Positions 8,048-62,412 of a stretch of 64,000 bases of DNA are shown here, piece by piece. The notes under the pieces were generated by a model that made no database searches, was not told the DNA's origin, and saw only the letters and a list, made by a program, of their open reading frames with translations. The stretch lies in assembly GCF_000142905.1 (NCBI RefSeq), contig NW_013657653.1, positions 124,001 to 188,000 on the forward strand, written 5' to 3'. The number at the start of each line of letters is the position of its first letter. Position 1 is the stretch's first letter. The DNA comes from Thecamonas trahens ATCC 50062. Lineage: Eukaryota > Protista > Apusomonadida. Both the position numbers and the translations under genes were made by a program.

Positions 8048-8051
<4 letters not shown>

Positions 8052-8082
8052 GTTTGTGTTTGTGTGTGTCGACTGGTTGGTC

Positions 8083-33023: not shown

Positions 33024-33139
33024 GATGGGGGGTGAGGGGCTAGTGGTTCTTGTCCGCGACGGGGGGGGGGGGGGGGGAGGGGGGGAGGAGGGGTCGAGAG
33101 GGGGGCACTCCGGGCAAATACACCCCAACTCAAACCTCC

Positions 33140-33162
33140 GACACACACACACACACACACAC
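33140..33162. repeat. (AC)n microsatellite in a divergent promoter
   Basis: AC dinucleotide run between the CdsA-like and transportin genes. Confidence 0.9.
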
Positions 33163-33313
33163 CTCGGACAGACCGCCAGCCACGCCACCCACCAACACCC
33201 CACCTCACCCAACAACACCCCACCCCTGCCCACACATATACACACCACCACCACCACTACAACACACCTGTTGCTCCCCTACACACCACACATACACACG
33301 GCCAGCCCTTGTC

Positions 33314-33510
33314 ATGGCATCGCTGAGACCGCGGGTCGAGTTTGGGTCGCTGCCCGACTCGCAGAGCGTCGAGGTGGCGGCGGCAGGGCTTGTGGCGCGG
33401 TTTGCGGATATGACCAACCCGCATGTGGTGCCCGATGTTCTGAAGGCAGCGACGACATGGCTGGGTGCGCTGCAGGCGTCGACGGAAGCGTGGCCGGTAC
33501 TGACATACGC

Positions 33511-33541
<31 letters not shown>

Positions 33542-39035: not shown

Positions 39036-42000
39036 TTAGATCCGGCTGCCTATCGACGACCACTCCTCGTCCGAATTCTCGAGGACTCGCGGCTGCGAAC
39101 CAACAAGCAGCGAAGCTGAGGCATCCAGCTGATCTGTGGAGAAGACCTTGGACCGGGACCAGGCCGCAAGCCGCTGCATGCCGGACATCTCGCGAGTGAG
39201 GACGACGCTTGACGAGTGGTCCGACGGGTCGGAGAGCTGGGCATTGGAGCGCGGGGCTCTCGGTGAGCCGAGAGCGGACGAGTCAGCCGAGGCAATGCTC
39301 GAATCTGAGACCTGAGCGGTCATGCCGGGCGATACGTTGAGGGCACGGAGAACGGTAGACTTGGTGAGGACCGCACCGGCCGGAGCAGCGTCGACCGAGC
39401 CGACGTCAGCGCGGCGCGCGCGGGCGCGCGCGGTGTCGTCCATGACAGGTGCGTGACGGGCGCCTCGGGTAAGTGCGTCGAGATCGCACTCGACGATGGC
39501 ATCCGAGGCAGCGCTCATGGCGGTCGACGCAGCTGAGGTGAGGTGCGAGGCCTCCGCGTCTGAGCGAGCTGAGGCGATCGAGCGCGAGCGCATGGCAAAG
39601 AGAATGACGACAACGATGGCGGCGATGGCGACAACGACACCAGCGAGGATGGCCCAGCCAAAGTTTGTCTTGGCGCCAGAGCCAGATGCGCCGTTGAGCG
39701 GAATGCCGACCGGCGGGCCGGTGGCGAGCGAGACGGCCGAGGAGCCGGCCTCGAGCTCGGACGCGGCAGTGTAGCCGGCGGCAAGCGCTACGTCTCCGGT
39801 GAGAAGGAGGTCGAGAGCGCAGGCATCGATGAGCGCTTGCGTGCCGACAAACTGGGCGCAGGTGGCCGATGCCGAGTCGACTTGGTCTTGCGGCCAGGCT
39901 GAGAGCGAGAACTGCGCGGCGGCGGCCGGTGAGGGACCACAAGGTCGGCGGTGCCCGGTAGGGCGTCGTTTCTGGCGCGCCACGAGTTGACAAAGGTGCT
40001 CGAGTAGATGAAGGCGGTGTTGTCGGGCGAGCCAAGCGAGCCGTCGGAGGCCTTGATGTCATTGCTCTCATCGCCGTCGGGAGTGCCGAGGAGGCCGAAG
40101 ATCTGACCCTGGGTAAAGGCCGGGATGACCGGACGGATGTACAAGTACTGGACGTTGTACGACGAGGCAAGGACGTTGACCTTGAGGCCGAATCCACCAG
40201 AGCCGATGTAGTCAACCTGGAGGCGGAGCGCGGCGGCTGCGTCGATAGCGCCGGACCAGCCGTAGCTGATGCGAACGGTGGCGCGGGCGGCATCGCCAAC
40301 ATCGAGTTCGCCGTCAAGCGGCGCGCCGGGAGCGACGGCTGCCGACGTGTCGAGCGTTTGCCACTCGGCGGCGCCAGGCAAGCGGAGGGCAATGCGCGGC
40401 CAGGCAATCGGGAGGCCAGGGGCCGGCGGGTCGGTGCGGATGATGGCAACGGCCGGGCGGCCGGCGAGCGAGACGCCAGCGCCGGCGTTAACGGCAGCAG
40501 AGCCAGCTGCGGCGATGCGGGTGGTGGCCGAGTAGTCACGAGTCCCGGTGAGGACAAAGTCGCCCGAGGCCTGGAACGACCAGTCGAGGCCATCGTACGA
40601 GCGGATGTGCGGGTCGCCGTAGGCAGCGGCAAGCGGAATGTCGGCGCAGGCGTAGGGATACGGCAGGACCGAGACCTCGTCGACAACAAGCGCGCCGGTG
40701 TGGAAGCGGTGCATGACGTAGACGGTAAGGGCAACAACAGGCTCGTCGTAGCGAACCGAGCCGGTGATCATGGAGGCTGCGGTAGTGCCAGGCTTGATGG
40801 CCACGTGCTTGCCGTAGTCCCACTCGCCCGACTCGAGCTCGGCGTCGATGTAGATGGACAAGTACGGGGCGTAGCCATCCGAGACGGCGTCGGTCGTCAC
40901 CTGCGCCGCGATAAAGAACGCAGTCTGCGGAGACGCGAGCTCAACGCGCTGGCCAACAATGATGTCGTCGGACGAGTCGCTGTTAACCAGACTGAGTGCC
41001 GAACCGGTGTGGACAAGCTCGCCGCCCGAGTTGCCCATGTACGGCGCCCAGGTTCCGATCATGCCAGCCTCGACCGGGGCGAGCGGCTCGTCAAAGCTTG
41101 GGTTGGCGAGGATGTTGAAGCCCGACGTCGCAGGGTCCATGCACGTGCCGTCAGCCGTGGAGCGGGTAGGCACAACGGCAAGCTCGATGCCGCGAATGAA
41201 AGCGAGGTCGTCAGACGCGGTGTTGGAAACCATGAGAATAATCTCCTTGACGCCGGCGGGAACGCCGATGTCGAACCGGCCGGTGGCAATGTTGCCCGAG
41301 AGGGTGAGGCCCGGGAGCCATCCATCAAAGACGGCGGTGAGGACTACCGAGCTCCCGACCTTGGCTTCGTAGCCAATGGTGAGTACAGCGCGGCCAGCGT
41401 GGGAGAGGATAGGGTCTTCGACGTTGAAGGTGGCCGAGAGGGAGGTACCAGCAGTGATGGAGATGGCCGGGACATGTGAGAGCGGAGCGAGAGCATTGGC
41501 GCCGACAGCCCAATCAGCAGGCGCGTCGAGCGTGAGCTGGGCGGGCACGAGATTGAACGGCGCGGCGGCCGGATCGATCATATTCCACGACCGCTTGCCG
41601 CTGCCGCAGACGCCGGCCGAGCCGCAAAGCTGCGAGAGACGACGGAGGAGGACGCGGCCGCCATCGACGCCGTCGACGCCGACCATGCGAGTGGTGGCAC
41701 AGCTAAGATCGGCGGTGACCGAGACAAGAGCGTTCGAGGCACAAGGCTTGCCCTCGGGAGTAATTCCGGTACCATCGGCGAGAATGAGACACGACGCGCC
41801 CCACGCGCAAGTTGCCGAGAAGCTGTCAAAGGTCGAGGCGGCCGATGCAGCAGCACCAGCTGAGCAGAGCTTGGCGGCGAGCGCGTGGTAGACCTCACCC
41901 GAGTTGGGCGCAACCTCCCATCCGCACGGAAGCTCGGAGAGCGGAGTCGGGTCCGCCGTCGCCGCATTGCAGTCAGTGCCGTAGTCGTCACCCTCAAAGA

Positions 42001-45000
42001 CGGCGTACTCGTAGCAGCCGATCGAGGTGAGACCAGCAAGGGACGGCGGGTTGCGGGAGATGACGGCGTACGGCTCGCTGACGCCCAAAAGACGGGCACC
42101 CTGGTTGACGCCAGCGCACGATCCGCCGGGCACAAAGGTGACCGAGCCGGTGAGGCCGCCGCTAAGGTCGCACGAGGCGCAGGCCGCGGCCGCATCGCTG
42201 GGGGTGAGGACGAGGGATGCAGTGGCAGAGGCCGCAAGCTCGAGCGCAAGCGCAGGATCGGCGGTGATGACAAGCGACCTCTCGTTGGGGCTGACCTCGA
42301 GCTGGGCGCCGACAAGCGCAGCAGTAGCCGCAAATGATGAAGTGTCAAAAGCGTAAGGCATGCCCGCGTCGAGATCAAGGGTGATGACGATGGCAGCGGC
42401 GGCAGCGTCCGAGTAGGCGAGGTCAAAGCCGCGGACGTGTGCAAGAGAGAGGTCGACGAGAGCCGAGCCGTCGGTGGCGGCGGTGGCACGAAGGCCGAGG
42501 GAGAGCGCGGGCGCGGCGCGGGTGGCGACGATGCCCGGGTAGGTTGCCGGAGCGGCGGCGTGCCAGAGAGTGGCGGAGAGCGGCAGGTCTGGTGCGGTCG
42601 ACGGAGCCCAGTCGTTAAGCGGAAGACGGAAGTCGGGCACAAGGTGGGCTCGAACAGTGATGACAAGCTCATTGTCGGCCGGATCGGCAGAGGCCGGGCG
42701 AACGATAAGCGGCGCGACCGGAGTGAGATCGAGCGAGCGCGCGTCCGGGGTAAGCGGGATGTCGGCGTCGACGATGCCCGCAAACGAGGCGGAGAGCACA
42801 GCCGACTCGAGGACCCAGGTCTCATCGATGTCGAGGGTGAGTGTAGCTGGCACCATTGTCCCGTGCGGGAGCGTGGCGGTCAAAGTCAGGTCGACTGACT
42901 CATAAGCGAGGACCGGGAAGAGGCGAGCGGCCGAGGCACTCGCGCATGTGGTGGAGATCTCGAGCGGGCGAGCGACAAGCGGGGTGATGGCGACCGAGTG
43001 GGCGGCGACGGCACCATGGGTGAGCGTCGGCGGGACGACTTCCGGCTGGCAGACCGGTGCGGTAGGGGCCAGTGAGCGAGCGCGGTAGGCGACGTCGAGC
43101 TCGATAGGAAGGACAAACGAGTCGCCGATGGGCACCGAGTCCGGCAAGGTAGCCACAAAGGTGCAGACAATGGCGTCGTGGGGGCTAGCGAGGCCAAGTC
43201 ATAGCTGAAGAGGGTGGCCGAGGCCGAAGTCGGGACAAGGGCGCTGGCTGACTCGATGGGAGTGTCGTCGAGGTGGAGGACGCAGTCAACGGCAACGTAG
43301 TCGGGCTTGGCGACGGTAAAGACAAGGTCGTAGGCGGGTGCCAGCGGGTGCCAATCGATGGTCTTGTGCTCCGTCGTCGAGGTCCAGGTCAGGACGTCGC
43401 CGGCCTGGTAGGTGTCTAGCGCAACCGCCGAGTCGAGCGCCGGCTGCGAGATGCCGAGCGTCGGCGAGATGACGACCTGTGTGGGCGAGGTGCCTGCCAC
43501 GGAGAGCACGTTGCTTGACGAGGCCGAAGTAGTGTAGGCGTACGAGGCAAAGAGCGCGACGTACGAGCCCTGGGCAGCGTCAGCATCAACGACGGTAGTG
43601 ACGGTGATGGTGATGACGTCGCCGGGAGTCTCGGCATTGTTGGGGTTGTTGATGATGGCGTCGGGATGCGAGCCGTCGTAGAGCGGGATGGAGAGCATGC
43701 CCCACGAGGTGACCGGCGGGACATCAAGCGAGACGCCGTCGAGGGAAGTCGGCGAGCTGATGGAGGCCGAGCCCGAGATGATGGTGAGCGGGCCGCCGAC
43801 ACCGACGTAGAGGTGCGGGTTGTGGTTGACACCCTCGGGGAGGAAGATGCTGATCTGGAAAGTGAGTTCCTCTGAAGGCGCGACGTAGGGAAGGTCGTCA
43901 GTGCCAAGGCAGGCATCAACAATGTCGACAGCGACGACAGCGGCAGCGAGGGTCCGGTCAAGGGTGACTGGGTCGGGCGCGTAGGTTTGCAGGCAGCCAA
44001 TGGCGGTGGGCGCCGGCGCAGCCGCAAACGTGCGCGCGGCCGTGTAGGTGACGACAGCGCCAGACGGCGCTGACTCGGCGATGACGCCAGGCAGCGCCAG
44101 GACTGAGATGTCACCCGGGTCGAGTCGCGGGTAGAGGAGAGTGACGATGTTGCCGTCGGTGGTGATGGACGACGGCGCTGGTCCGGAGCGGTGGGCGAGG
44201 TCGGCGACGTCAAAGGTGTGGTACTCGGGAATGGTGACAGGTGACACGGATGGCGACGTCGAAGGCCGGGGTGTGGCGAGCGATGGGGACCGAGACCGCG
44301 AGGTCGAGGGTGATGGTGTCGAGAGCGTCACCGATGATCGTCGGCGTCGACGAGAGGGCGACATCAACGTCAGGCTGAACAACGTCCAAGTGGTAGCGCG
44401 AGGTCACGCGCGCGCCTGACGACGTGATGGCACGGGCCCTGACCGAGACGCGGCTCGGAATGGTTTGCGGATCGGCGGAAGCGTCAAGCCAAAGAGTGAC
44501 GACAAAAGAGATCTTGTCGCCGTCAGAAACAACGTTGTCGGGAGCATTGGTGAGCGAGCCGAGCTCGATGGTGGCGGCCGAGCCAGCAGCGTTGATGGTA
44601 GCTGACGCGCCAGACCAGGAGATGGTCGGCGGGTCCGGGGTGGGACAATCGATTCGATGACGAGGATGCCTGCGGCAGACGAGGCAAACTCAATTTGGGT
44701 GTCGGGCGAGACACCCTCAGGCAGGAGGATGTCGAGAGTGACGGTTGCCGACTCGCAGGGCGCAAGGTCAAATTTGCCAGACCGATCCGCGGCCTTGGCG
44801 GTAAAGTCAAACGAGGTCTCGCCGTCGCGCCAGGCGAACGACGGCGAGGCGATGGTGACCTGCGCGGCAGTGGACGAAGGAGAGACGCGGCGAGTGCTGA
44901 GCGGAGCAGCAGCAGTGCCGTCGTAGCCCGCGGGCGCTGCGGCGGGCGCAGCGCAAGTGGCGCCCGCGCTGACCGAGTCGATGACATAGGCGTCAAACGA

Positions 45001-47072
45001 GACGATGGCAATCGAGTTGCCGGGCAGAGCGTGAATGATGAGGCCAGGCGAAGCCGAGTCAAACAGATGGTCGTCGGCGGCGAGCGTGTAGGCGAGTGGC
45101 GAGCCCGCGGCGTCGGTGACGGTCAGCGAGAGGCCGCATGGGAGCGGACGACGCGAGAAGCAGGTGTCGTCCAGGTCAACAACAACGGTCAGGTCGTGAG
45201 CAACGCCTGATTGAGTGTTGGCGTAGGCGAGGGCAAAGCGGACAGTGTCGCCGCCGTCAACGTTCTTGGTGGGAGCGGCAACAGGCGTGGCGAGCGCCGA
45301 GGTAATGGTCATCGAGGTGGGCGCACCCGATGCAGAGGTACAAAAGTCAACGTCAAAGGCGTCGAGCCACGCAGATGCATCGCAGGAGGAGCAAGTAGCG
45401 GCAGCGGCAGGGTTCGAGGCGGCGATGAGCGAGGCGGCGGCAAGCGAGACAAGCGGCTGGCGAATGGCAGCCTTGGATGGGTCCGAGGTAACAAAGATGC
45501 CGTTCTCGACTGCAGTGGCCGTGGCCGAGGCGACGGCGAGGTCGGGCGAGAGGTGATCATCAGCAATGAACGAGCAGCGGATGACAATCTCGCGGGTGAC
45601 CGACTGCGGGTCCGAGTGTGAGGGGAACGACCAGGAGAGCGAGTTGGCAGCGCCGTCGACGGCAAAGACCGGGGCACCGAGGACGTCGGTGGCGGTCGAG
45701 TCGGGCGCCGGGGCGCAGGACCCGGCCGGCGGAAACGTGCTGGGAGCAGCATGGTTGTAAACGGTACCGGTCACATCGTGGCGCGGGGCAGGAAGTGCGA
45801 GCGAGATGTCAAGCGAGGCCTCGTCAGACGAGATGAGCATGTAGCGGAGCTCGTAGGTGATGGCGTGGCCAAGGTCGGCGATGGCGAGGGTCGAGGTCGG
45901 GACGGCAGCGCCATCGACGCCGACGGTCTCGAGGACGATGGCCTTGGGCTTGATGGGGCGGCCGGTGGCCGCAGCCGCGGTGATGGGCACGCCCGAAGGG
46001 ATGATGTCACCCCGCCAGATCGAGTCGGCGGCAATGGCGTCGCCGGTGACAAGCGTGGGGTCGGTAGTGACGCGAGTGTCGGTGAAGGCCTCGTTGACGT
46101 TAGCAAACGAGATGAGCGACGCCGACTCGCAGCCGTGGAGCTCGCCGGGGACAGCGCGGTGGGTCGTCATCGAGCCATCCGTCTCAGGGCGAGCATCAAA
46201 GCCGACCGACGACATGTCGTAGACAAGCGAGATCGGCGCAGGCGAGCCCGAGTTGGCGTCGGGGGCGGTGAGCAGGCCGTCATTGTTGGGCGTGGTGCCA
46301 TCGGCAAGGACGAGCTCAAGGACCTCGATGTTGTTGATGGAAAAGTCTCGGACATGACGTTCGAGGTTGTCCACGCCACAAGATCGCGCGGGGTGAGCCA
46401 CTTGGCGCCGGCGGCAAGCGACTGTGGGTAGTCGGACTCGATGGGCACGGCCATCGAGGCGAGCATCGGCCGAAGTTCGACGTCAATGGTGTGGACCGAC
46501 GGCGGGCGGGTGACGCTGGCGCCGGTTGCCGTATCGGTGAGCGTGTAGCTCGAGAGCGAGACAGTAAAGGTAGCAAAGCGCGGACCGCCGACGACCGGCG
46601 CCTGGCCATTGACCGGATCGAGCACAGGCGTCACTCCGTCGGCCTCAAACTCGGGCGCCATGAATGGCGCCGTCATCGTGATCGTCGCGTCGGGCGTGAG
46701 CGCACCCGCACCGCTGTCGCCAGCAAAGGTGAGCGTGCCGCCGAAGCGAGCGGTCTCGAGCGTGAGGTTGAAGGCCGAGGTCTGGCACGTCGCCGTGCCG
46801 ATCTCGCACTCGCCGCCGACGTCAAAGAGCGCGGTGGCTGTGGGGTAGCCGACAGTGACCGCCAGCGATGAGGCGTCGAGCTCAAAGCCGGTTGGGACGG
46901 CCAGATCGATCTTCATCCCGTTGGGGTGGCACGTTCCGGTCGCCATCACCGGGCCGGCGACAAACGAGGTCGTCACCGCGAGGTCGGCTCCGAGCACCGT
47001 TGGGATGAGCGCGGCTGAGGTCACGAGGATGAGCGCAAGCGCGCGCACGGGAAAGGAAGAAGGAAAAAACAT
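39036..47072 (-). CDS. Giant type-I membrane adhesin-like protein (~2,680 aa): signal peptide, DUF11/isopeptide-type Ig-like repeats, CBM-like module, VWD, TM, cytoplasmic tail; five frameshifts
   Basis: Signal MFFPSSFPVRALALILVTSAALIPTVLG; repeats VDGGDTVRFALAYAN and I.LPEG; NILANPSFDEP; VWD YGDPHIRSYDG..FQASGDFVL..GLLGTPDGDESND; TM WAILAGVVVAIAAIVVVILFAM. Frames switch at ~46345, ~44640, ~44240, ~43183, ~39935. Confidence 0.8.
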
Positions 47073-48288
47073 AGTTGACTTGATCAAACGAACAGCTTGT
47101 ACTGAAGGTGCACAAAGGCTCTTGTCTTTGGAAGAAAAGAGGGTACTACAACATGTTGAGAAGAACGCGACGCGAAAATCGCTTCGGCTTTAATCTGCAG
47201 CCCACTCGAGCGGGTGTTGCGTTTGCGGACAGGTTGGTACGTTCGCCGGATTTTGTGCGATGGCGGTCTGCCGAGCGTCTGGGGAAAGGGCTGTCAGGGC
47301 GAGGATAGCTCCCACTACGGCTGTATAGTGTAGTTGGCTGAAGTAGGAGAAATGAAGAAGGCTCGGGTGTGTTGGGGAGCCGCGGGGAGTGCAAATCGCC
47401 GTGGGTGGGGGCAAAAAGGACAGCGGGTAAAATATTTGTTCTGTTCCATGCGGATGATTGTCAAATTGGCAGCCAGAGCACAAGGTGCGGATGACGGGAC
47501 GTCGTTCTCCGGCGGCCCAGGAGATGAGTACGGAGCGCAACGAGGTATTAGGGAGTTGTACAGCAGATGAACGTGGTTGGCAAGGTTGCCAGCGGGCCGA
47601 TTGCAGATTGCGCATTGCAAAGAGCTTTGAAGCGCGTGGAGAACCTGCGCAAGGCTTGCGCACTCGCAAAGCCTCCAAGCTGAAACCTGACGCTGCACTC
47701 TGTCCGGTTGGGGGTCAGATCAACTACAATGAGACTGAACAAGGCACTTAGATGCGCTTGAGTCGATGTAGGGCGGCATACAAGCGCGCGAGCGCGTCGC
47801 ACGCAGGTCGGCCGAGTCTGTGTCACGGTGGTGCCCCATGGGCTAAAACAATGAATTCTATATAAATATATGTAAACGTGACTGTACATATATATATTTT
47901 GTGTCAAATTGATTATTTTGAAAGTTGTGCTGTTTTTCAGCAACAAATATATAAAAGTAATATTTTGTCGCGTTTGGGGTGGAAATATGCCTGTTTTTTG
48001 TAAGGAGGCTGTGAGACCAAACTGAATGCAGCATCGTTGACTCGCTATTGTTGCCGGCAGCATTGTCAGCACACCAGAGATCCTCGCCTTACCCTCAAAA
48101 CACTCTAACGAGGCCCACCCCGCTGCCCTACGGACTTTCCAGCACTCCTACATCACCAACCTGCAGCTACAAACAAGGACGTTATGCAGCTTCCGCTGCC
48201 ACGCCATCTACATGCTGACTTGTCTCCACAGCTGGCTGCTGGGCACAAAAAAATGTATGATCATCCTGCCACAGCAGATGTGGTTTAG

Positions 48289-51200
48289 TTAGTTCAACGT
48301 CGGCTCGTCTTCAGTCACGTCGGCGACAACAGGCGCAAAGCCGCGTGCCGCAAGGAGAGGAAGCGTGCCGTCAGCCTCGTCATCAACGCCACTGACACCG
48401 ATCGACCACCGCCCGCCCCGGAGCATTTTGCGCCGCTCCCGGAGAACAGCGGCATCGAGCGAGCGTCCACGGACTGCAAGGACCGCGGTCGAGAGCCACT
48501 GGCCCCAGAACGCGATGCCCCAGAGCGCAACGACTGCCAGCGGCCCGTGCCCGCGGAGGAGGAAGAGCGCCACGCCGCCGACAATTGCCGACACCGTGGT
48601 GGTAACCACTGCATGAAGGGCGAGCACACGCCGCTGCCCGCCCTGCACAACGTTCCACACTGGGGCCACGAGCTCGCCGGCCGCCGCGATGGTCCACAGC
48701 CCGAGCGAGACGGAGATCGAGACCGCGGCCTGCGACCGCCCGCCGAGCACCGCCGCCGAGACTGCTGCGCCAAAGGTGAGCAGGTATCCGAGCCCAGCCA
48801 CGGCCTTGCTCGCTGTGTCCGGCGAGTCCAGCGCTAGGTGCGCGCCAGTCATGACCACAACCACCCGTGTCCGCACCGTGTCTAGCACGAGGCCGAGCGC
48901 AAGAAGCACGAGGCTTGTCGCCACCACCACCACGCCGGCTCCACTCCGCAGCGCGTTGGCAAGCGCAGGCACAACAAGGACAAACATCGCGAGGCCAAGC
49001 AGAGCACGCGCGAGGCGCGCCACAACAGACGCACCCACGAACCGCCGTCGCGCGAGCACGTGCGACGCTGCCGCAAGGCCTGCCCCAACGCACGCCGCCG
49101 ACGCAAGCCCGGCCGCCACGTTCCGCCACATCGTGTCTTGCTTGGGCGCTGGCGACACAGCCGCGCACTGCACTCCACCGAGGTTCGCCACAGCCTGGTA
49201 CGCCGCCGCAACAGCGTCCACCGTCGTCGGCGACCACTCTGCAAGCCGCGCCCGCGAGACAAGCGCAAAGACCACAAACCGCGCCCACCCGAACCGGTCG
49301 CCAAACACCTGGTTGAGTCCGTAGTCTAGCCCGCGCTCGGCAAACACAAACCCGCACAGTGTCGCAATCGCGCACACGCATGCAGAGCCCAGCACAAAGC
49401 CCATCAGGCTCACGCTAAACGCCCCACCCGCCCCGCCACCGTCGCCACCAAGCACAAGCGGTCCGTACGGGACGCACGCAAGCCCGTCGCGACTCTGCTG
49501 AGCGCTCACCGCGCCCACAACCCGCCATTGCGCTGCCGCCGCGCACGATTCGAGCTCCGGCGCATCTGTGCACGGGCCGCCAAACAGCGCATCCGCACGG
49601 AGCTGCCGCGCCGTGCACTGCGACGACGCGTAGCACGTCCACGAGCATCCATCGTCGCCACAGTACTCCAGCCGCATCGCTCCGCCGGCGTTGCTCACAA
49701 CGCGCGCCTCCTCCACAACAGCCCGCGACGGCTCCCCGTTCGCCACGTTGACAAGCTCCAGCCGCGAGCCAGACCCGGCAGGCTCAAACACAATTGTCGG
49801 CAGCGTGAGCGCCGCGGCGCCAACAAATGCGTCGTCAGTCGACGCTACCGTCGACATCCCGCTCCCGACAGCCGTAATTGCCACCCGGGAGAACAACGCA
49901 CTACCCGGCCGCCCGACCGTCACGTCCACAGCCTTGGCACCAGACGGCCGAGTCACCTCGACCTGCTCGCCCACAGCACGTACCACCGCCCGTGCGCTGC
50001 CACTCGCCGCGCTCGTGTTGAACACCGTCGCGTCGACAGTCACCGCAACATCATCGTCGCCGCCCCACACCGTCGTCGCAGGCACGTTACGCTGCTCCGC
50101 GCTCGTCGAGCCGAGCGCAACATCGCAGCCGCTTCCCTGAATCGACACCGCCGTCCGCATCGCAGCTGTGTCGATCGCCTCAAGTTAAACGCAGCGCCGC
50201 CCGCACCAGCAGTGCAGTGCACATCGGCCTTGCTCGCCGCTGCAAACACGCCGAGTGCAACGGTAGCCCGCGATGTCTTCCGCGCGCCAACCTCAAACAC
50301 TGACCCGTCCTCGCGGGTCACATACAGCTCGGCCTCCTCGCCAACAGCAAGCTTGGCCTCTGACCACACAGCTGTATCGCTGAGCGAGATCCGCGCGCCT
50401 TCGGTCGTCACGTTCACCACTGCAGCACTCACCTCAGCCGCAATCCCAGCCACGCTCACGTTCGTTGCCGTCATCTCCACGTATGACACGCCAAAGAGGC
50501 CGGCACCGCATCCTTGCGCCGACGCGGCCGCTGCTGAGCTCACGCCGAGCTCGCCCACAACCACATCGATCACAACAAGCGACGGCATCGCGTTCTTAGC
50601 CACGCCCTCGGCAGACACGACACAGTGATGGTCCACGTCCACCGCTTTGCCGGCGTCCATAAACACCCGCGTCGTCTCACCCACAAGCCACACAGGCGCC
50701 GTCGCCGAAACAATCGCCCCAGACTGCGCCAGCACATCGCCTCCAGCAATCACAAGCGGGAACGTAAACTCGGCAGGAAGGATGCTTGTATGCGGCGCGA
50801 GCAACACGAGCGCAGTCTCCAGTCCGTCAGGTGCAGGTGCGTCTGCAACACGCACCGTGGTGCCCGGCGCGCTGCTCGCGTCGAGGACAAGCACGTCAAC
50901 GTGCTGCAGCGTCAGCCGCAGCCCACCAACAATCACCCGCCCGTATCCGCCGTAGCCTAGGTCGTGCACGCTCACGTCGTAAGACGCCGACGTGGAAGGC
51001 AGCGCCGGAAGGTGCAGCACAACCGTGCCGTTGCCTCCGTACACTCCATGGACAGCAACTGACATTGGCTCGTCCACCGCAGCGAGTGCAATGTCCAACA
51101 CCCAATCCTTGGCCACTTCGCCCGGGTGGCTGGCAGACGCGGCAGCAAACGTGCTCTCGGACGAGACCGGAAGCTGCACAACCTCGATCACCTCCTTGCC

Positions 51201-54200
51201 GGCAAGGTCAAAGTCGAGATGCCCACCCACAGGTGTCGTCACGTTGATCGTCCGCGGCGAGCCGCCAAAGTAGCCGGCCAGCCACGGATATGTCGACATG
51301 TCTGGCGTCCCGCCGAGTAGCGACATCGCGTCGTCCGTCGTTAGCTGCGAGACAACAAGTGTCGGCTCAGGCCGCCCGAACCCACACGGCACCACTGAGT
51401 CACCCTCAAGCAGCGACGGTGAGAGCGAGTCCATCACAGGCGGCGCCCAGAACACAACAACGTCGGCAGCTCCATCAGCGCCCACAGCCACACGCGTCGG
51501 CGAGTCCAGTGGGCCTACAAAGTTGGCAAAGTCCACCCCCTCTCCGAGATCCACCTCGAGCGGTGCCGAAGCTCCAGACACCAGGTAGTCCAGCAAGTCA
51601 ATGCCATTTCCAAGTGATGCGCTCAATGCCACGTTCTGCACCTTGGCCCCGAGCACGCCGTCCCTCCCACCGCCGGTTGTGATGTTCATCACATATTGGC
51701 TGGCGACAGCAGAGTACGCCAGCTGACATGCCGGCAGCCCATCGGTACCCGCTGGCACTCCGTTCGCCGCTGCAAGGCCCATCGTCCATGCTGTCGCCGC
51801 TGTCGGCGGCCGGAGCAAAACGCCCGATTGCGGCTCTGCCATGCAAACCCGGTGCGACGCAAAGTCGAACCACTGGTCCGGAGCACTCGCGCCCGTCGCA
51901 CTCGCAAGCGTCAGCGACCCACCGCTCGCTGTTCCCACAAACACCGGCGCCGCAATCGCCGCCAGCGGATGCTTGTTCGACCCGGCAGTCCCAAACGTCA
52001 CGTCAATCGTCCCGTTCGCCACAACAGCTGCAGACGACGACGCCATCACAAGCTTGGCAGCGCCGGCAGACGTGTACAGCACCTCGGTAGACTCGCTGGC
52101 CATCACATGCTCGGCTGCAGTGCTGCCCACTCCAAAGTCGACACGCGCACGCGCCACGCCAACCATCTCCACACTGAACGAGCTTCCGCTGCCTGCAGCC
52201 GGCGTCACCTCGATGAGGCCGTCCGACACCGCGTAGCTCATCGTCCGTGCATCGTCGCCACCACGCACGTGCACAAACACAGTTCGGTCACTGGCGTCCT
52301 CGTTGAACACCCGCACCTTACATCCATACCCGTCGAGCTTCTCGCCGCCGTTGCCGAGCACAATGTTGTGGAACCCGCTGCCGCGCGGATACACCGTCAG
52401 TGTCGAGCTCTCATCACACCCGCGCAGGTCGTACGTCAGCTCATGCTCGGCGCTCGCACCCACGCCCATCACGTTGACATTCGTCCCCGCCACAGGCGTC
52501 GCCACGTACACCATCGTCTCACGCTGCGCATCAGACGCATGCATCTCCACGTTGAGTACCTGAATGTCTGCATAGTCCACAGCCCGCGACGGTCCGCTGC
52601 CAAAGTGACCCACAACGTTCGTTGCCTGCACATCGGCCATCAGTCCGTCGCTCGCCAGCGTCACGTTGAACACATTGTCCACACCGCCGTTGCCGTCCAC
52701 AGACAGCATCGACACAATGCCGGCAAGGTCTGGCACAAGGAACACATCGTCCGCATCACCACCAGCCACACTCGACGCCGCCAGCGGCGACATCGCCACA
52801 CCGTCGCTACTTGGCTTCCACTCGAGAACGTCGTCCTCGTCACCAAGCGACGCAGTCAGCGCCACGTTGTCCACACCGAGTCCCACAATACCGTCGACAC
52901 CACCGCCGGTCGTCACGCTCATTACGTACCGTGACGGCTGTCCGCCGTATGCCAGCTGGCACGCCGGCAGCCCATCGGTCGCCGCGGGAACACCCGCTGC
53001 AGCCGCAAGCTCCACCGCCCACGCCGTCGGCTTGACCGTCGGCCGCATCGGCGTTGCCGTCTTGGCCTCTGCCTCGCACACCCGGTGCGACGCAAAGTTG
53101 AACCACTGGTCCGGGGCACTCGCGCCCGTCGCACTTGCAAGCGTCAGCGACCCACCGCTCGCTGTTCCCACAAACACCGGCGCCGCAATCGCCGCCAGCG
53201 GATGCTTGTTCGACCCGGCAGTCCCAAACGTCACGTCAATCGTTCCGTTCGCCACAACAGCTGCAGACGACGACGCCATCACAAGCTTGGCAGCGCCGGC
53301 AGACGTGTACAGCACCTCAGTTGTCGCGTGGACCATCTTGTGCTCCGCGACAGTGCTACCTACGCCAAAGTGGACAAGCGCGCGAGCAACAGGTCCGTTG
53401 AACACAATCTGCATTCCGTCTGTCTTGCCTGACGCATCTGTCACATGAACGCCGCTGTCAGACACAGCATACTTGAGCGCACGCTTGTCCTGCGCTGCAT
53501 GGACATGGACCGTCACGTCGGCCTTGGCCTCATTGACAATCTCGATATCACACTCATAGTCGATGAGCGAGTGGGCTCCGTTGCCCAGGAGCACAGAGTG
53601 GCTCCCCTCGCCCTGCACGGTCACAACCAGCTTTGACTCCTTGGTGCATCCGCGCAGATCGTAGGTTAGCACCGAGCTGGGCGCACCACCAATGCCAACC
53701 AGGTTGACATTGGTACCTGCCACCGGTGCCGCCACATACAGACCAACAGACTTCTTGCTCGCCGAAGCATGCACGTTGACGTTGAGCGTTTGGATGTTGC
53801 CAAATCCGACACCGCGCGATGGGGCCGAGTCAAAGCCGCCGAGGACAAAGTCGGCCATGATGTCCGCAAACGTCGCATCCTTGGCAAGCGTGACACTGAG
53901 GCTGTTGGCATCGCCACCAGCTCCGTTGACCGTGACCAGCGAGCCGAGAGCCGCGAGGTCAGCAACCTCAAACTTGTCGTCGCCGTCGCCACCGTGAGCA
54001 GACGTCTCGGTCCCGGCCGGCACTGCAGCAACCGTAAAGGTTGTCGCCTGCGACGCCGAGCCCTTCAGCCGCAGCCGCGAGAACACACCCTCGTTACCAA
54101 GAGCCACAGAGAGCTCGTTCTTGCCGAGCAGCACCGTCGACGACTCGATCCGCACGCTCTCTGTCACAACCTCCACCGCAAGCGTGTCGCCTCCAGATCC

Positions 54201-57200
54201 AGAGACCGTCACCGCATGCCCGCCGTATGCTGCCAAACTGCCTGATATTGTCACGTTGTTCGCAGTCGACACCGTCACCGCCACCGGACACACCGCGCCT
54301 TCGATACCGATCGACGCCCGTTCCACAGGCTCGGTGAGGCTCACACTCCCGCAGGTCTTGCCCAGTGAGGCACCGGCACCGCTGGCCGCGCTCACCTTGA
54401 GTCCACTCGCCACATACGTCGGTGTCCCGCTCGCCGGCGCGTGATACGCCATCGGAAGCTCGACATGGGCGGTGGCGACCGACGGCAGCGCAACAGGTGT
54501 CGAAGACCGCGGCACCACCCGGAAGGCGCCGTTTGTGGATCCAGCAAACGTCACAACCTTGGCTGACACTGATGGCACGCCACGGGTCGGCAGCGCCTTA
54601 CCCACCGGCTGGCCAGGCACCACAAAGGCAAACCAGATCATGCCGTTGCCGGCATCGTCAATGGTGTACGTCGGCAGCTCACCACTCGCCAGCATCATGC
54701 CGCTCGTCGTAGAGTCGACCAGCCCGAGGTTGATCGCTCCCGCACCCGAAGAGACTGCAGGCACAGACTGCGGATTAAACTTGTGCGTAAAGAGCGTCGT
54801 CGACCCGTCCCAGTGGACGACGGTCCAGCATTTGTGGACCACAATGAGGTGCACACATGCTCGGATGCCCAGCCCGTACTTGAATGTCAGCACAATGCCG
54901 CCGTCGAGCGAGTGCATCAGGTTGCCGTGCTTCACCAGCCGCGCAATCTGGTCAAAAGTGATGACCTCGCCACCGTTCGGGTTGTTGAGCCGGACTGAGA
55001 CGTCGATCTGGAGCCCGGCGTAGCCGTAGCCCTTGAAGATAAAGACGCCGACCGAGACCTCGCCGGTCATCGACGCGGTAAAGATGAGCGGGTAGTGCGG
55101 CGAGCCGTCCGGGTTGGTGTACGTCACGCCCAAGCCGCGGAACAAGTACGACGGGTTCTTGTAGTGGATCGACTCGTAGACCGCATCGTAAGTGAGAGAG
55201 ACCTCACCGACCGAGACTGTGAGCGCAGCCTTAAAGTCTAGCGAGAGCACAACGTGCGGGAACGGCCAGATCGGGATGGGGAAATGCATACCAAGAGCGA
55301 GCGTGGCGTCCGGAATGGTGACACCCACAATGGCAAAGTTGGTTCCCATCATCATGTCAAGGAGCTTCTCCACCGGATCATGCAGGATGTTGTACTCGAT
55401 GCCGAACGAGCCCGAGGTCGTCACGCCCGACACAAACGAGGCAATCTCCTTCTCGTGAGCCTGCGCAACTGCCGAGTTGTACAGAATCTGCTTGGTCTTG
55501 GGTGGGAGGTAGCTGTCGGGTACGAGGACTGGCTTGTGAAGCGCAAGCTCAAACGAGCCGAGCAGTTTGCTCACACCGCAGCCCTCGACGCCGAGCGATG
55601 AGAGCTCGTCAGCAACGGCGACAACGTCCATGATCCGTGCGTACGTCCGGACCGCCGCCACAAGATCGTTGATGTTGCAGTCTGACGTGAGTTCACAAAA
55701 GTACCGTGCCACACGAAGGGCGTTAAAGTTGGAGCCAAAGATCTTGGACATGCCCGGAATCGGCTTGAGGAGCACGCCTTTGGGGCCAAAGACCTTGTTG
55801 AGCGGATCGAGGATCTTGGTAACGTGGCCCATCATGGCGTCGATGTACTTGACAAGCATGGTGCCGAGGCACATCTCGACGTCGTTGAGCGCGAGCTTGG
55901 TCGGCGTGGTTGACGTCTGCCCGGCCTTGACGTTAAACTCGTACCCGGCCTTGAACGAGGCCTCGTAGTGGATGAACGCGGTAAGCGCCTCCTGTGGCGT
56001 GGTGTGCGCGAGGTCGGCAATGAGTGGACCGGCGCCAAGGAGGCCGCTACCGCCCAACTGAGCCGAAATGTCGATGTCGACGTCAGCCTTGGGCTGAAGC
56101 GTCAGCGCGAGCGTGCCCTTGAGGTACGTCTCCGCCGGCGTGGTGATAAGCTCAAAGCCAAGCGGACCAAGCCCTCCGACCAGCTGACAACCGGATGGCA
56201 TGTCGAGGTCGACGGTCGACGAGAAGGCCGGCTCGACCGGGAGCGTGACCGAGACGCCGTGAACCGCCGAGTAAACGAGCGCAATGGAAAAAGTCCAGTC
56301 GGCCTCGAGCTGGGCGTTGCACTGGATGTCAAGGTCGAGCAGGCCATGCGCGCCCCAGTCTGAGTTAACCGAGAACAGCGGACGGAGTGCCGAGTTGCCA
56401 AACTCGATCGACCAGGTGTAGCTGCGAGCCTGCGCATCGTGGGCGACGGTGACCGGCTGCGCCAGGTGCGGGAGGTGCGCGTTGAGCGCGCCGGTCACAA
56501 TCTCGACCACAATCTCGTCGACAGTTGTCGAGACCGGAATGCCCGCGAGCTTGTCAACGAGGTCGACCGAGATCTGGTGGATGATCTGCGAGGCAACGGC
56601 CGGCCCGGTGATGACCGCGAGCTCGCCATCAAAGAGCGTGGCGAGTTTCTTGTCGATAAACGCGATTGCCTTGGAGCCAATGATCGAGTCTGGACCAAAC
56701 ATTTGTGCCCGAAGCTTGGCGATCTCGCTTGAGAACGAGGAGAAAAAGGTGCCAGGATGCGAAAAGAACTCGGCCATCCACGACCGCGAGAGCACCGACT
56801 CGAGGTTGGACACAAAGTCGGCGCACTTTGCGTCCGAAGCCGTCGCAGATGACGGCTCGGCCAGGTTCGGCACTTCCACAGAAATCTCACACTGTGACGT
56901 GTCTACAAACGGAAACGTGACCGTCGCTTCAAAGCCGGCCGAGCCGCCGAGGACGACCCCGGTGCCCGGCGAGGCGGCGAGAGTGGCGGGTGCCGTCTCT
57001 CCCACCGCATCTGTAGCCGCCAGCCATGCCCGCGACTTTGCCACCTGCGCAGAGAACGGACCAAACTGCAGTTTGAGCTGGCCGTCGTCACTGCCACCGG
57101 CAGACGCCCGCACGTACGTCTCGTCCTTGTTGAGCGAGATCTGGATCGGCCCAGACTCGGGGAAGGTGACGTCGAGAACAAGCGCAACTTCGACCTTGGC

Positions 57201-60200
57201 CGACACCGCAAGGTTGTTCGATGTCGACACGCCCGCGGCAAGCTCGCCTCCACCGTGGAACAGCTGGGTGTCCATCACCGACGCGTCGGTGTACGAGTAC
57301 GAGTAGGCCGTAAACGTGAGCGGGAGCTGGAACATGTCGTGCGCAAGCGTGACGTCAGAGCACACCGGCCCAACTTGGTAGTGGAACGCGTCGGCCATAA
57401 ACGAGCAGAACAGCGCAACCGACATTGGTTCGCCGTGATCGCACACCGCTGCCACCGTGTCGTCGTACATGGGCAACAGCTTGCCGAGGACCCGGCCAAA
57501 CGGCGAGTGCTTCATCGGGGCAAGCGGGGCTTGGACGCTGGGGTCGGCCTTGACGTCGGCCAGAAAGTCGACGCCGGCCTTGAGCAGCTCGCACATCGAC
57601 GCGTCCTTGGACATCATGCCCTTGAGCATGCGGATCAACGCATCGTCGCCAGACCACGTCGCCGTCGCCTCAGCTTGCAGGTTCTCCTTAAACTGCTCAA
57701 ACGCAGCGCCAGAGGCCAGGTCGCCCGAGTCAGACACGCCAAGGTTGATGGTGAGGTGTGGGAGGCCGGGCACTGGCGCGTCGAGCGCGTCGATGTGCAT
57801 GTCACCAACGACTGCAGAGCCAGAAACATCGGCCTCGAGTGTAAAGGTGGAGAAGAGCGAGCTCGTCGTCGTCCCGGCCTTGAGCGCCGTAGCGGTTGTG
57901 AGCCACGGCGAGGCCGCAGTGAGAACCAGCGACGCCGATGTCTCCGCCGTCACCGACCCGACCTCGAGCCCGAGCGGGCCGAGCGTTCCGGTTGTTGCCT
58001 CTGCCTCGAACGACGTAGCAGCAGAGAGGCCAACCACAAGCTCCTTCACCACCGACCGCGACTGGCTCATCACTGGTGCGGCGTACTCGAGGCCAGGCAC
58101 CGTGATGTTCGAAATCGAGAGCGAGTACGGGATGACCAGGTGTTGAGTCTCCGGGTTGATTGCCGCGTTGATAGCAATCTCCACTTGCGGCGAGCCCGGG
58201 TTGAGCACTGGGTCGGGTGCCACAACACCGACGCCGAGCACGCCAGCGAGCTCGACGTCGGTGATCTGCGACAGCAGCGCGTGCATGAGCTGCTCCGACA
58301 CTAGCGCACCGGGCGCGAGATGAATGTACTGCGCCACCTCAACCGACTTGGGTGGGACGTCAGGCTCGACAGACCGCACAACAAACTGCGCGTGGAGCTG
58401 GAAGCCACCGCCGGTGGCAGGCACCCGCGCGGTGGAAAAGTCCTCGATTGCTGACCCGTTAACAAACGCAGTCTCGATCGAGATGTTGCGCGCCGATCGC
58501 AGCGGCGCGCATCCGTGGATGATGCCGACCTCGGCTTGCACAAACGCGTCGACGCGGGCTTGCGCGCTGGACGCAGGCAGCTCGACGTTGATCGGCCCAG
58601 CCTTCATCGTCGACGCCACCGACGAGGTAGTTCCGTCAAAGAGCGTCGCGTTAAAGCCGAGCTTGAAAGCAGTTCCAGGCAGGACGCCCGAGAAGTACGC
58701 TGCCCAGCCCGGCACGTTCGGCACACACGACGGCAGGCTCAGCGCCTCGACCTCGATAGACGACGGAAGGTGGACGAGCGAGTTGATACCTGACTGGGCA
58801 AGGAGGACAACCAGGTCGTCCCACCGTCCAAAAACGGGCACCGACGACTCTGTCCAAGTCGTTGTGTACGGCGAGAGCACGTGACTCTTGCTCTTGGCCT
58901 TCATCGAGAACGATTTCACCACTCCCGGCACCGCCGGCTTGAGCGAAAACACTGCACAGCTCTGTCCGTCCTGCGAGAAGACGCTGCTCACGCTCGGTGC
59001 CACAAAGTCACGGACCCGGAGGCCGGCCTTGCCGGCATAGGTGCATCCAGCAAGTCCGGCTTCGGCCGTCGCAAGCAGCGACCTCGCCAGGTTGCCAGTG
59101 TTGAGCGCCTCAAACGAGAACGAGCACTCGACGGTTGGCAGCGACGGCGCGTTGACGCCAATCGCGTAGTTCTCGGTGTGTGCTGCAATTGGCGCGTCCA
59201 CACACACGGTCGCGTACATGAGCTCCGGCTCAAGGTCACCAGCCCAGGTGAGCTTGGCCAGAATCGGCTCGAGCGCCGCAGCAACCGAGTCGAGCGCGTC
59301 GACGCCCTTGTTCACCAGAGGGAGCGGGAATGAGCCGGCTCCAGAGCCAAAGCTGGCAACCGACGAGAGCGTGTTCGACAGCGCCGCTATGATGTCCTTG
59401 GGTGCCGTGGCAGAGAGCGTCGGAAGGAGGGAGGCCACAGGGCCCGAGCCGTGGAGTGAGGCGCTGGCAAGCACGGCCTTGGGCGGAAAGTGGGGGTAGC
59501 CGACCACATTGACGGCCGCGTCCGACGAGAGCGGCACGGTCCCGTTGACCAGGTTTGCATTGTCCATTGCCGCGAGGTCGCTGTCCTCGATCGTCACACG
59601 CATCGACGCCATCGAGCCCGACAGCCCGTCTGTCTTGGCATCGCACTTGACCGAGAGACTCGAGCTGGTCGGGAGGTCGAGCTTAAGATGCATCGAGCCG
59701 TCGGTCACCGCCGCGGCCGACATCTGCCAGCTCGCTGGCGCTGCAAAATGCGCCACACGTGCTGTGCCGCTGACTGCCAGCGTCACGCTGCTTGGAGCTG
59801 CAGTCGAGAGTTCAAGCTCCGAAGTGAGGAGTAGGTGCAGCGGAACCCGCGAGAGGTCCACCACTCCGGCCCACGGGGCGGCCTCGGTCTGAATCCGCGT
59901 TTCAGCCCGCCAAACGCTCGCCACACTGACTGCCAACTGAGGCGCGCCAGCAGTGCCGGTCAGCTCGACGGTGACTTGCGCACCGAGCCCACCCGGCGCG
60001 GCGTCGAGCGCCGCCGCCACCACCGCCACCATGTCCTTGGCGTCGTGCGCATGCTTGCCAGCCACAGCATTCTCGAGTGCCTCGAGGACAGAGAGCATGG
60101 ACGCGCCAAGAACCAGGCTCGTCGGCCCAATCTCGCTCGTAGCCCACGCGTGATTTCCAGCGGTGGCCAGCTCGGTCGAGGCCGCCGAGAGCGAAGAAGC

Positions 60201-62412
60201 CAGCGCCGACGCACCGGCCGACGAAACCCTCACCTTGTTGGTTGCAACCTTGCCCTGCGCTAGCGAGGCCCAGGAAAAGCCACCGGCGGAAGAGGCGTCA
60301 GTCGAGAGCGAGACGCTCTCGACTTGAAGGCCCCCATTTGTGCATGCAACGTCGGCAGCCGTGTAGAGCGCGGCACCAGTCGGGTCAGTCGAGACCAGAT
60401 CCACCGCGCGTGCCCGGATAGAGGTGTAGACCTTGGGCGCATGCTTCCACGCAGGCGCACCACTGTACACCAGATCCATTGTACCCGCGAGGTAGACCGA
60501 CTGCTGCGCGAGCGTGAGCTGCGAGACGGTGGTGACAAAGCCGGGCGCACCAAAGCCGGCGACGGCAGGCACAGATGCAGTTAGCGCCGCAGCACCCGCT
60601 GCAAACGTGGCGTTAAGATGATGAGTGCAGGTTGCCGGGAGCGGGGCGGAGAGGCTCCGTCCAGCGAGCACAACTTCCAGAGTCGGCACGACTGTCGTCT
60701 CGCCGGCCAACGGAGCACGGAACTGAAGATAGCAATGCTCCAACTGCGAGGCGGCGCAGACGGTCCGCGTGTGCGGGCCGGTAAACCACGCCCAGAATCC
60801 GTTGAAACTTGGCGTCAGCGTTGCCGCTAGGTACGCATCCACCAGACCATCAACGCCAGACGCAGGCACAAGACGAGTGTTGATAAATTCGGCAAGCATT
60901 GGCGCAAGCGATGGCGTGGCCGTCAGCGCCTCGCCCACCTGCGCGGCAATGGCGGCCACATCGCTGGCATTGCCGGTCAGCGCTGCGTCCGGCAGCGCCA
61001 CGCCACCCAGCGACGAGCCGTCAAAGACGGGCGCGAGCGGAACAACCCGCTGCGCATCGGCGCCCGAGCCAATCATGACTGATGCCACAGAGCCCGAGAA
61101 CCGGACTTGGAGGCCGCGGCCCATGCCGAGGAGGAGCTCAGGCGAGAGCTCAACAATGGCGGTCGGCCACGCCGGCGCCAGTGCGTCGAGCGAGGTGGCA
61201 GCGCGCAAGACAATGCCAACCTTGTCTCCGACCGCGACCGTGGTGGCGGAGACTGAGACCGGAATGATCGACGTCGCCGAGACCGCAAAGACCGAGTCAA
61301 GCGTCGAGACGACGGCAGCAGCATCGGCTCCGGTTCCGGTCTGCGTAATCGCAGACGCAAGAGTTGACTCGAGAAGGACCGAGCAGCCGCCCACGAGGCA
61401 CTCGGCGTGCGCGGCGTAGATGGTCGCGCCGGGCACAGTCTCCGACGCCGAGCGGACGAGCTCGCCGCTCGCCACCACGACCGGGGCACCAACGCCCGTG
61501 GACACGAATCCAGCGCGGAGCGAGGCAAAGAGCGTCAGCGGGGTATCCATCCACGACGGAATGGTGTCCGAAGGCACCTGCGCCAAGGCATTGGCCACGA
61601 TGGTCGCAGTAGACGCCGCGACCGCACCTGAAGACGTTGGCGTCGTCGCGTGGATGAGAACAAGCGGAAGTTGGCCGTCGGTCGGGTGAGTGTCGACGAT
61701 AAGGACCTTGCCCGTTGCTCCGCTGGTGCCCGTCAGCTCGAGCTTGCCGTGGAAGGGCAGCTCGAGCTCGGCGAGGTACGCCAGCGGCATGGTCGTGAGC
61801 GGGAGCGAGGCCGTCATCTCCAGCTTGCCGCTAACGGTAAAGACAGCGTCTGGTGCCGAAGCCAGTGCCATCGACACGGTCACCGTCAGTGTGTGGCTGA
61901 CGGTGAGACCGGTCATCGACCCGCTCTCCGACGACGCTGACACCGAAGCCGCCCACGACGCCGAAGTCACGTGCGCCGATGCCAGAGACGCAGGCACTGC
62001 CATGGACAGCGAGGCGACCGGGCTAGGGGACAGCGTTACATCGAGCTGGGTCAATTCGTTGTTGCCTGCGCTTGGTGCACAGGCAGCGTGGTTGGCGACG
62101 GCCTTGGCAAGGCCGCCGGTCACCGTTGCCGCGCCCGGAAACGCATCGGGGCGCGGGGGGAGTCTGTTCTCACGCAAGCTCCTAGTGAGTCTCCCGCCAC
62201 CCACCTGTTGCCCCACCACAATATCCTTTGCGCTCCCTGCCTCCCCCTCCTTGCACTCGTCGCCTCCCCAAGGACGACGTACTTGTTGCTAGACCGATGA
62301 CGGCCCGGCACAGGGGTGGTGGGAGCGGACGGCTGCCATCCTGGGCAGTCGCCGCTACAGCCACCGCGAGCACCGCCACAAGTCCCAGGAGGACAGGCGA
62401 GCACCCACGCAT
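48289..62412 (-). CDS. Giant (~4,700 aa) surface protein: signal peptide, RTX-adhesin-like ectodomain, C-terminal multipass membrane domain; frameshifts at ~62270 and ~50180
   Basis: Signal MRGCSPVLLGLVAVLAVAVAATA (ATG 62412), 4059-aa core ORF, GGxGxD-like motifs, and about eight hydrophobic helices in ORF 48289-50160. Confidence 0.82.
51847..53318. repeat. Near-identical 239-nt direct repeat (51847-52085 and 53080-53318) inside a ~1233-nt tandem unit
   Basis: By manual comparison the copies differ at 4 positions. The offset of 1233 nt equals 411 codons. Confidence 0.92.

Follow-up and report, generated by a model that had tools for sequence, protein, structure and literature searches.

The described systems closest to the gene reported here, AMSG_05791 of the apusomonad Thecamonas trahens ATCC 50062, are the giant RTX-type exoproteins and adhesins of bacteria, the TRP/FLC-like (PF06011) proteins of protists and fungi, and the polycystin-1 and adhesion G-protein-coupled receptors (GPCRs) of animals. 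The gene lies on the minus strand of a 64,000-nucleotide stretch of contig NW_013657653.1 (positions 124,001 to 188,000), hereafter the window. The bacterial exoproteins, here cyanobacterial and proteobacterial open reading frames (ORFs) of 2,200–19,400 amino acids (aa) with FG-GAP, Calx-beta, DUF4347, Cadherin_4/Big_9 domains and HemolysinCabind repeats, share with AMSG_05791 an unannotated module of ~350–500 residues that lies far within a giant extracellular protein and precedes units with single G.DGDD.F-type motifs. They carry tandem RTX nonapeptide blocks, C-terminal in two of three cyanobacterial ORFs in the layout of type I secretion, and no transmembrane (TM) anchor, whereas AMSG_05791 combines a Sec signal peptide with a polytopic C-terminus, has no RTX array and no FG-GAP, Calx-beta or cadherin domains, and is not homologous to them over the ~3,700 ectodomain residues flanking the module. 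The PF06011 proteins have the same general layout of a large Cys-containing ectodomain followed by a multipass block, but their profile is unmatched by the TM blocks of AMSG_05791 and its paralogues, and the ESM feature similarity is only 0.78. Polycystin-1 and the adhesion GPCRs offer an analogous giant ectodomain with a multipass architecture, and a comparable adhesion-and-sensing logic is plausible; however, their GAIN/GPS, PLAT, PKD, REJ and 7tm_2 domains have no Pfam match in AMSG_05791, and fold searches gave no match above background.

Architecture of AMSG_05791

AMSG_05791 probably belongs, as one of four paralogues, to an undescribed and ancient eukaryotic family of giant surface proteins that would act in adhesion or recognition, with a frame break in the assembled gene that is probably an assembly error. 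The protein consists of a signal peptide, an ectodomain of ~4,250 residues without a known domain, a four-Cys stalk, a membrane block of 8–9 helices and a short cytoplasmic tail. In the window it is represented by two minus-strand ORFs, one of 4,059 codons (50040..62219) and one of 623 codons in another frame (48289..50160), and its exons and reading frames were searched and folded as separate pieces. The longer ORF, far above chance expectation for an open frame in 63% GC DNA, is 100% identical to AMSG_05791, annotated "uncharacterized protein" in the 28.7 Mb, 131-contig genome, and a typical signal peptide, MRGCSPVLLGLVAVLAVAVAATAQ, starts at an ATG further upstream, at 62412. AMSG_05791 is a real gene for a membrane-anchored surface protein of ~4,670 residues. 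Its features, several of them defined by comparison with the paralogue AMSG_10070 on contig C55, are as follows.

62283..62412, minus strand: exon 1, with start codon and signal peptide, then a conserved Cys (PPPLCRA); equivalent exon in AMSG_10070, and orthologues also have a signal peptide then a Cys
62164..62282, minus strand: intron 1, 119 nt, donor GTACGT, acceptor ...gagaacag; positions conserved with AMSG_10070
50184..62163, minus strand: exon 2, ectodomain, ~3,990 codons in the frame of ORF 50040..62219; colinear homology to giant eukaryotic proteins
54720..56480, minus strand: central conserved module, aa ~1914–2500 of the longer ORF (core 2050–2500), holding LLKPIPGMSKIFG, NILHDP..LLDMMMG and conserved Cys
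54945..54995, minus strand: degenerate EF-hand-like loop VRLNNPNGGEVITFDQ; alignment to the canonical loop of Balamuthia
51540..54005, minus strand: ~410-aa unit duplicated in tandem, with one GGDxDD.F motif per copy (GGDGDDKF at 53993, GGDADDVF at 52763)
50178..50190, minus strand: frame break, where one nucleotide is missing between ...AAFNL in the ectodomain frame and EAIDTAAMRTAV... in the TM frame; alignment with AMSG_10070
49474..49662, minus strand: Cys-rich juxtamembrane stalk, aa 167–229 of the TM ORF; Cys positions and family alignment
48469..49431, minus strand: polytopic membrane block, eight long helices and one short hydrophobic helix; hydropathy and AlphaFold2 (AF2) helices
48289..48468, minus strand: basic membrane-proximal stretch, short acidic tail with DGTLPLL, and stop codon; ORF translation

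An earlier note, made from the sequence of the window alone, had described a single receptor-like gene with a signal peptide, a giant ectodomain, a Cys-rich juxtamembrane segment, about eight TM helices at ~49415–48470 and a short tail with an acidic LPLL motif, and this outline holds in each part. The stalk carries seven Cys at TM-ORF aa 167–229, hydrophobic helices occupy aa ~244–564 (nt 49431–48469), and every motif quoted there is present in the longer ORF (FPLPLVNK at aa 964, LLKPIPGMSKIFG at 2150, NILHDP at 2277, LLDMMMG at 2286, VRLNNPNG at 2409, GGDGDDKF at 2743, GGDADDVF at 3153, LGNGIDLL at 3536 and LGEGVDF at 3558). Its statement that the ectodomain has many GGxGxD-like motifs was overdrawn: a single strict RTX nonapeptide (GGxGxDxUx) occurs in the 4,059 aa, with no tandem spacing and no HemolysinCabind match. 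The type I secretion layout is likewise absent, its place being taken by the N-terminal signal peptide and the C-terminal block of 8–9 TM helices. Neither ORF matches Pfam (threshold E ≤ 0.1) or NCBIfam, nor do the C-terminal domains of 12 relatives or two full-length relatives.

A family of giant eukaryotic surface proteins

The central module is the most conserved part of the family. A HMMER search with its core (aa 2050–2500) against 1.84 billion representative sequences returned 86 matches, 58 of them below 1e-10 and the best in other eukaryotes at E 1e-72, nearly all being proteins of 2,500–5,500 aa with the module near residue 2000–2500. All matches carrying an organism name are eukaryotic: Balamuthia mandrillaris (QOT17_000772), Naegleria gruberi and N. 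lovaniensis (NAEGRDRAFT_52947 among the Naegleria genes), Salpingoeca rosetta (two genes, including PTSG_02609), Monosiga brevicollis (MONBRDRAFT_29887), Salpingoeca infusionum and Phalansterium solitarium, the last with a transcript ORF of 4,536 aa. AMSG_10070 of Thecamonas itself belongs to the same family. No animal, fungus or plant is among the named matches. A further member, adjoining an SH3-SH2-SH3 adaptor gene, lies in assembly GCA_000151315.2 (KE346376.1), which we take to be Capsaspora owczarzaki. Metagenomic members were classed as eukaryotic by architecture and neighbouring genes only.

Homology of these giants to AMSG_05791 is colinear over aa ~100–3900, with 22–34% identity outside apusomonads. 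Most full-length members also have an N-terminal signal peptide, a four-Cys stalk and 6–8 hydrophobic helices within the last ~400 residues, and the signal peptide and C-terminal TM cluster recur in a transcript-derived 'complete' ORF of S. infusionum; two Naegleria gene models share the colinear ectodomain but are without the TM cluster. The C-terminal domains align weakly (13–22% identity between lineages) around a shared four-Cys stalk motif, an invariant Pro and an invariant Trp, the four stalk Cys being nearly invariant across 12 family members, and an LPL[LF]-like tail motif recurs in some. AMSG_05791 differs from the other protist giants in its extra ~410-aa tandem unit and in the degeneration of its EF-hand-like loop. 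Since this architecture is common to distant eukaryotes, the fusion of the ectodomain to a polytopic anchor is ancestral to a very wide eukaryotic span rather than an invention of Thecamonas. By its distribution, the family reaches back at least to the common ancestor of Amorphea, and probably further. No paper found in the literature mentions any locus tag of the family, and we found nothing that describes the family, how widely it occurs, its conserved architecture or its bacterial-type module; AMSG_05791 itself is already public as 'uncharacterized'.

A count of paralogues, which the earlier note had proposed, gave four module-bearing genes in T. trahens: AMSG_05791 (contig C27), AMSG_10070 (C55:228213-241000), and two divergent copies with ~25% identity in the module (C5:226392-237083 and C63:744-5165). 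The TM profile matches only three of the four, the C63 gene lying at a contig end, and in the C5 copy a C-terminal TM cluster is likewise present, with a longer tail. AMSG_10070 holds a single copy of the ~410-aa unit that aligns twice to AMSG_05791, which is how the tandem duplication was identified; a self-BLAST of AMSG_05791 for internal repeats reported none. Between window positions 54941–56740 and the corresponding part of C55 (~233300–235100), nucleotide identity is 87–97% across the module, falling to 57–73% in the N-terminal flank and to a patchy 59–87% on the other side. This identity peak suggests a gene-conversion tract, rather than selection alone.

A module shared with bacterial giant exoproteins

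The only part of AMSG_05791 with identifiable relatives outside the eukaryotic family is the central module. An ESM-Atlas feature search placed it nearest to cyanobacterial 'hypothetical protein' clusters (0.94), and a fold search with its model listed unnamed planctomycete and cyanobacterial clusters; both kinds of match were treated as leads and then tested by profile search. In a six-frame search, the eukaryotic module profile (A3) matched 29 of 401 cyanobacterial genomes (best E 4e-21), always within ORFs of 2,200–11,700 aa, and the module was also found in 18 of 401 Pseudomonadota genomes in ORFs of 2,683–19,427 aa. The three cyanobacterial ORFs examined all contain FG-GAP and Calx-beta domains, two of them ending in C-terminal RTX repeats (one also with DUF4347) and the third having Laminin_G_3, and in one proteobacterial ORF of 14,920 aa the module is surrounded by RTX repeats and Cadherin_4 and Big_9 domains. 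An hhalign comparison of 14 eukaryotic with 10 cyanobacterial modules gave 99.5% probability and E 6e-23 over 413 aligned columns, and in the reciprocal direction the cyanobacterial profile (A5) recovered the eukaryotic giants, AMSG_05791 at E 4.8e-8. Single-sequence phmmer searches of the cyanobacterial proteins against the eukaryotic giants matched only P0082, itself of bacterial type, and hence the link between eukaryotic and bacterial modules needs profiles to be seen.

Homology to the bacterial proteins is confined to the module. A full-length hidden Markov model (HMM) of 22 eukaryotic giants aligned to the bacterial giants at HMM positions ~1886–2490 (AMSG_05791 ~1842–2444) with E down to 5e-39, and outside the module gave at best marginal, non-colinear matches (independent E-value, i-E, 6e-4 to 1e-2), so that about 450–500 of the ~4,250 ectodomain residues (~11%) are shared with bacteria. 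On these profile alignments, the central ~450–500 residues are homologous to a module of bacterial giant RTX/FG-GAP/Calx-beta/cadherin-like exoproteins, and the rest of the protein is not. The likeness to giant calcium-binding RTX-related proteins drawn in the earlier note therefore survives for the central module and fails for the remainder of the ectodomain, which has no RTX array. One of the marginal matches (i-E 6e-4 to 1e-2) pairs the GGDGDDKF region with G.DGDD.F units of a proteobacterial giant protein, and single GGxGxD motifs also mark the units that come after the module in the bacterial giants; shared GGxGxD-type units downstream of the module in Thecamonas and bacteria are suggestive only. 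Proteobacterial ORFs of 11,600–19,400 aa in three genomes, G415 (contig C1), G431 (C29) and G491 (C115), carry the module, and the giants of G415 and G431 have strict GGxGxD motifs every ~130–140 aa downstream of it.

In a maximum-likelihood tree of 18 eukaryotic-type and 14 bacterial-type modules the two groups are split by one long branch with support of 100/100. The tree is unrooted and gives no direction of transfer, its metagenomic rows are labelled by architecture and profile preference, and several of its rows are long-branched. It fits either a single ancient exchange or common descent, and it rules out a recent, Thecamonas-specific acquisition.

The AF2 model of the module (predicted local distance difference test, pLDDT, 74) is mixed alpha/beta as a whole, with a beta-hairpin region at its N-terminal end, a bundle of helices and, C-terminally, eight long antiparallel strands that form a meander. 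Fold searches with the module found no match in the PDB above background (Foldseek best E 7e-3; VIA Z ≤ 6.9), and the VIA matches to outer-membrane beta-barrels are read as probably reflecting a generic long antiparallel meander. Sequence-profile searches of the PDB with the module and the TM profile returned non-significant EF-hand and ClC rows only; those at the EF-hand-like loop position were to EF-hand proteins only. At that position Balamuthia and some metagenomic members have a canonical EF-hand-type loop, DIDGNGWVTFNE, of the form DxDxNGxVTxxE, to which the VRLNNPNG... loop aligns; the bacterial module consensus holds two EF-hand-type loops. The Thecamonas loop, NNPNGGEVITFDQ, departs from this form in having Glu at position 6 in place of Gly6 and Gln at position 12 in place of Glu12.

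Gene model and the frame break

The 5' end of the gene can be modelled by comparison with AMSG_10070, which has an equivalent signal-peptide exon ending in ...LCKAMMG. One short 5' intron is supported since the paralogue shares not only this exon but also the GTACGT donor and the acceptor context. The homology-guided splice (donor 62282, acceptor 62164) misses the frame by 1 nt beside a C7 run, and an alternative donor 4 nt downstream, at 62278, yields an in-frame intron of 115 nt. The public AMSG_05791 model of 4,545 aa starts at an internal Met (62003) without the signal-peptide exon, and in the region 50160–50210 spans the frame break by a mini-intron (HCTA|AAMRT) that removes residues aligned in the paralogue. 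The public gene model needs correction: it leaves out the signal-peptide exon and hides a frameshift behind an artificial mini-intron.

AMSG_10070 runs through the ectodomain/TM junction in a single frame of 3,217 codons and aligns residue for residue on both sides. Because this alignment is colinear in one frame, the junction near 50186 is a 1-nt frameshift and not an intron. An intron at this position was considered and ruled out, the paralogue alignment being gapless and the annotated mini-intron deleting aligned residues. The joining of the ectodomain and TM frames assumed in the earlier note is borne out by the alignment, with the difference that they meet across a 1-nt frameshift.

The alternative that survives best takes this frameshift as real, in which case the locus would be a pseudogene or would encode a secreted ectodomain of ~4,040 residues ending 48 codons past the shift, with the TM ORF not co-translated. 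We regard this as unlikely. The assembly as given does have a 1-nt deficit with no splice-compatible fix, AMSG_10070 likewise has frame breaks, and the gene-conversion tract joins the two copies as is seen in decaying or redundant duplicates. Against this, no other stop occurs in 4,059 + 623 codons, and a 623-codon frame would stay open by chance in ~65% GC DNA with a probability of ~3e-7 by our own estimate. The TM frame is still 51% identical to that of AMSG_10070, with Cys, Pro and Trp conserved, and the break sites differ between the copies, the two frame changes of the paralogue (~239520 and ~237220) lying where the window gene is open. An assembly indel is likelier than a pseudogene because neither frame contains any other stop and the TM frame retains this identity and these residues, and frame changes at other sites in the paralogue fit scattered assembly indels. 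The break at ~50186 is thus most likely, on these sequence comparisons, an assembly error in an intact gene.

The membrane block

The AF2 model of the TM part contains eight long helices and one short hydrophobic helix at low confidence (pLDDT 56), and by the positive-inside rule we infer nine putative passes with the N-terminus out and the C-terminus in. Searches with the TM model gave background matches only: TRP channels were found at Z 7.0–7.5 over ~110–124 residues, within the background of helical models. The earlier note had compared this block with TRP-like modules. No such relationship was recovered with the PF06011 profile, which matches neither the TM ORF, nor the loci at C27 (AMSG_05791 itself), C55 and C5, nor 12 family members, although it finds at least 32 other loci in the T. 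trahens genome (e.g. C43:258785-259591); PF06011-bearing clusters appear weakly (0.78) among the ESM-Atlas feature neighbours of the TM block. Many of the PF06011 loci of T. trahens lie in ORFs of 1,000–2,700 aa and look like a large receptor-like family distinct from AMSG_05791.

A second alternative holds that the membrane block is the functional core of the protein rather than an anchor, making it a mechanosensor in which the ectodomain gates a channel, a transporter or a signalling unit of 7TM type. The retention of 8–9 TM helices across very distant eukaryotes, the invariant Pro and Trp, and the apparent N-out, C-in orientation of the last seven helices by the positive-inside rule would all be consistent with such a role. 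It nevertheless seems quite improbable given the low sequence conservation between lineages noted above and the failure of Pfam, PDB profile and fold searches to place the block in any channel, transporter or GPCR family above background.

Origin of the gene

The proposal of the earlier note, in which Thecamonas or a recent ancestor took up a bacterial RTX adhesin and joined it to a membrane module of TRP-like or adhesion-receptor type, is largely refuted and very improbable: the module does share genuine homology with the giant RTX-type proteins of bacteria, the ESM-Atlas features and fold search do point to cyanobacterial and planctomycete clusters, and PF06011-bearing clusters are weak feature neighbours of the TM block, but only ~11% of the ectodomain is shared with bacteria, without an RTX array, the complete architecture recurs in Amoebozoa, Filasterea and choanoflagellates (in Naegleria the ectodomain only), the eukaryotic modules form one group in the tree as against the bacterial ones, and PF06011 matches 32 other loci of the genome and neither AMSG_05791 nor its paralogues.

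Bacterial contamination was also considered and is ruled out by the eukaryotic neighbours, the intron and the eukaryote-wide family. The neighbours in the window are genes for an acyl-CoA synthetase-type AMP-binding enzyme (1616-3526), a DHHC-ankyrin palmitoyltransferase (8014-10134) and a transportin-3/importin-13-like protein (33050-36226), all seemingly intron-poor. Large minus-strand ORFs of 1,122, 498 and 665 aa at 39788-47087, with a weak VWD match (E 1.6e-4), represent another giant surface-protein gene.

Proposed function and implications

We posit that AMSG_05791 would be inserted through the Sec pathway, with its ~4,250-residue ectodomain exposed on a disulfide-bonded stalk and standing out from the plasma membrane. 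The ectodomain could then serve as a very long molecule for adhering to or recognising substrate, matrix or bacterial prey, the conserved module being the likeliest ligand- or calcium-dependent element, while the polytopic C-terminus would anchor the protein and possibly signal. Every named species of the family is, we assume, a bacterivorous or surface-associated phagotroph. Several points weigh against this interpretation. The putative function is drawn from architecture alone; calcium binding at the EF-hand-like loop of Thecamonas is doubtful, its copies having a degenerate form of the loop; the TM part is poorly modelled, its helix count and topology coming from hydropathy and the positive-inside rule; the frameshift may be genuine, leaving a truncated secreted protein or a pseudogene; and the eukaryotic label of the metagenomic members depends on their architecture and gene neighbours.

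Few genes of free-living protists are as poorly understood as those for giant surface proteins, and here a family of 4,000–5,500 residues, with neither a Pfam domain nor a literature, is common to apusomonads, filastereans, choanoflagellates, amoebozoans and heteroloboseans. One module, shared with the giant RTX-type adhesins of at least two bacterial phyla, is all that connects the family to anything known, and this module of ~450 residues provides a concrete handle as an expressible and assayable domain. A further possibility, which we advance tentatively and consider rather unlikely as a whole, is that AMSG_05791 represents an unrecognised and very old class of giant polytopic surface receptors in phagotrophic protists whose core module was exchanged once, long ago, with bacterial RTX-type adhesins. 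Both may then bind the same kind of ligand, such as a bacterial surface or matrix or a substrate, and the 9-TM C-terminus would be a new signalling or channel module. The question is testable since orthologues are present in genetically tractable relatives of animals (S. rosetta, Capsaspora). It is relevant to the ways in which eukaryotes that feed on bacteria attach to surfaces and prey or recognise them, as well as to the ancient exchange of domains between the adhesins of bacteria and the receptors of eukaryotes.

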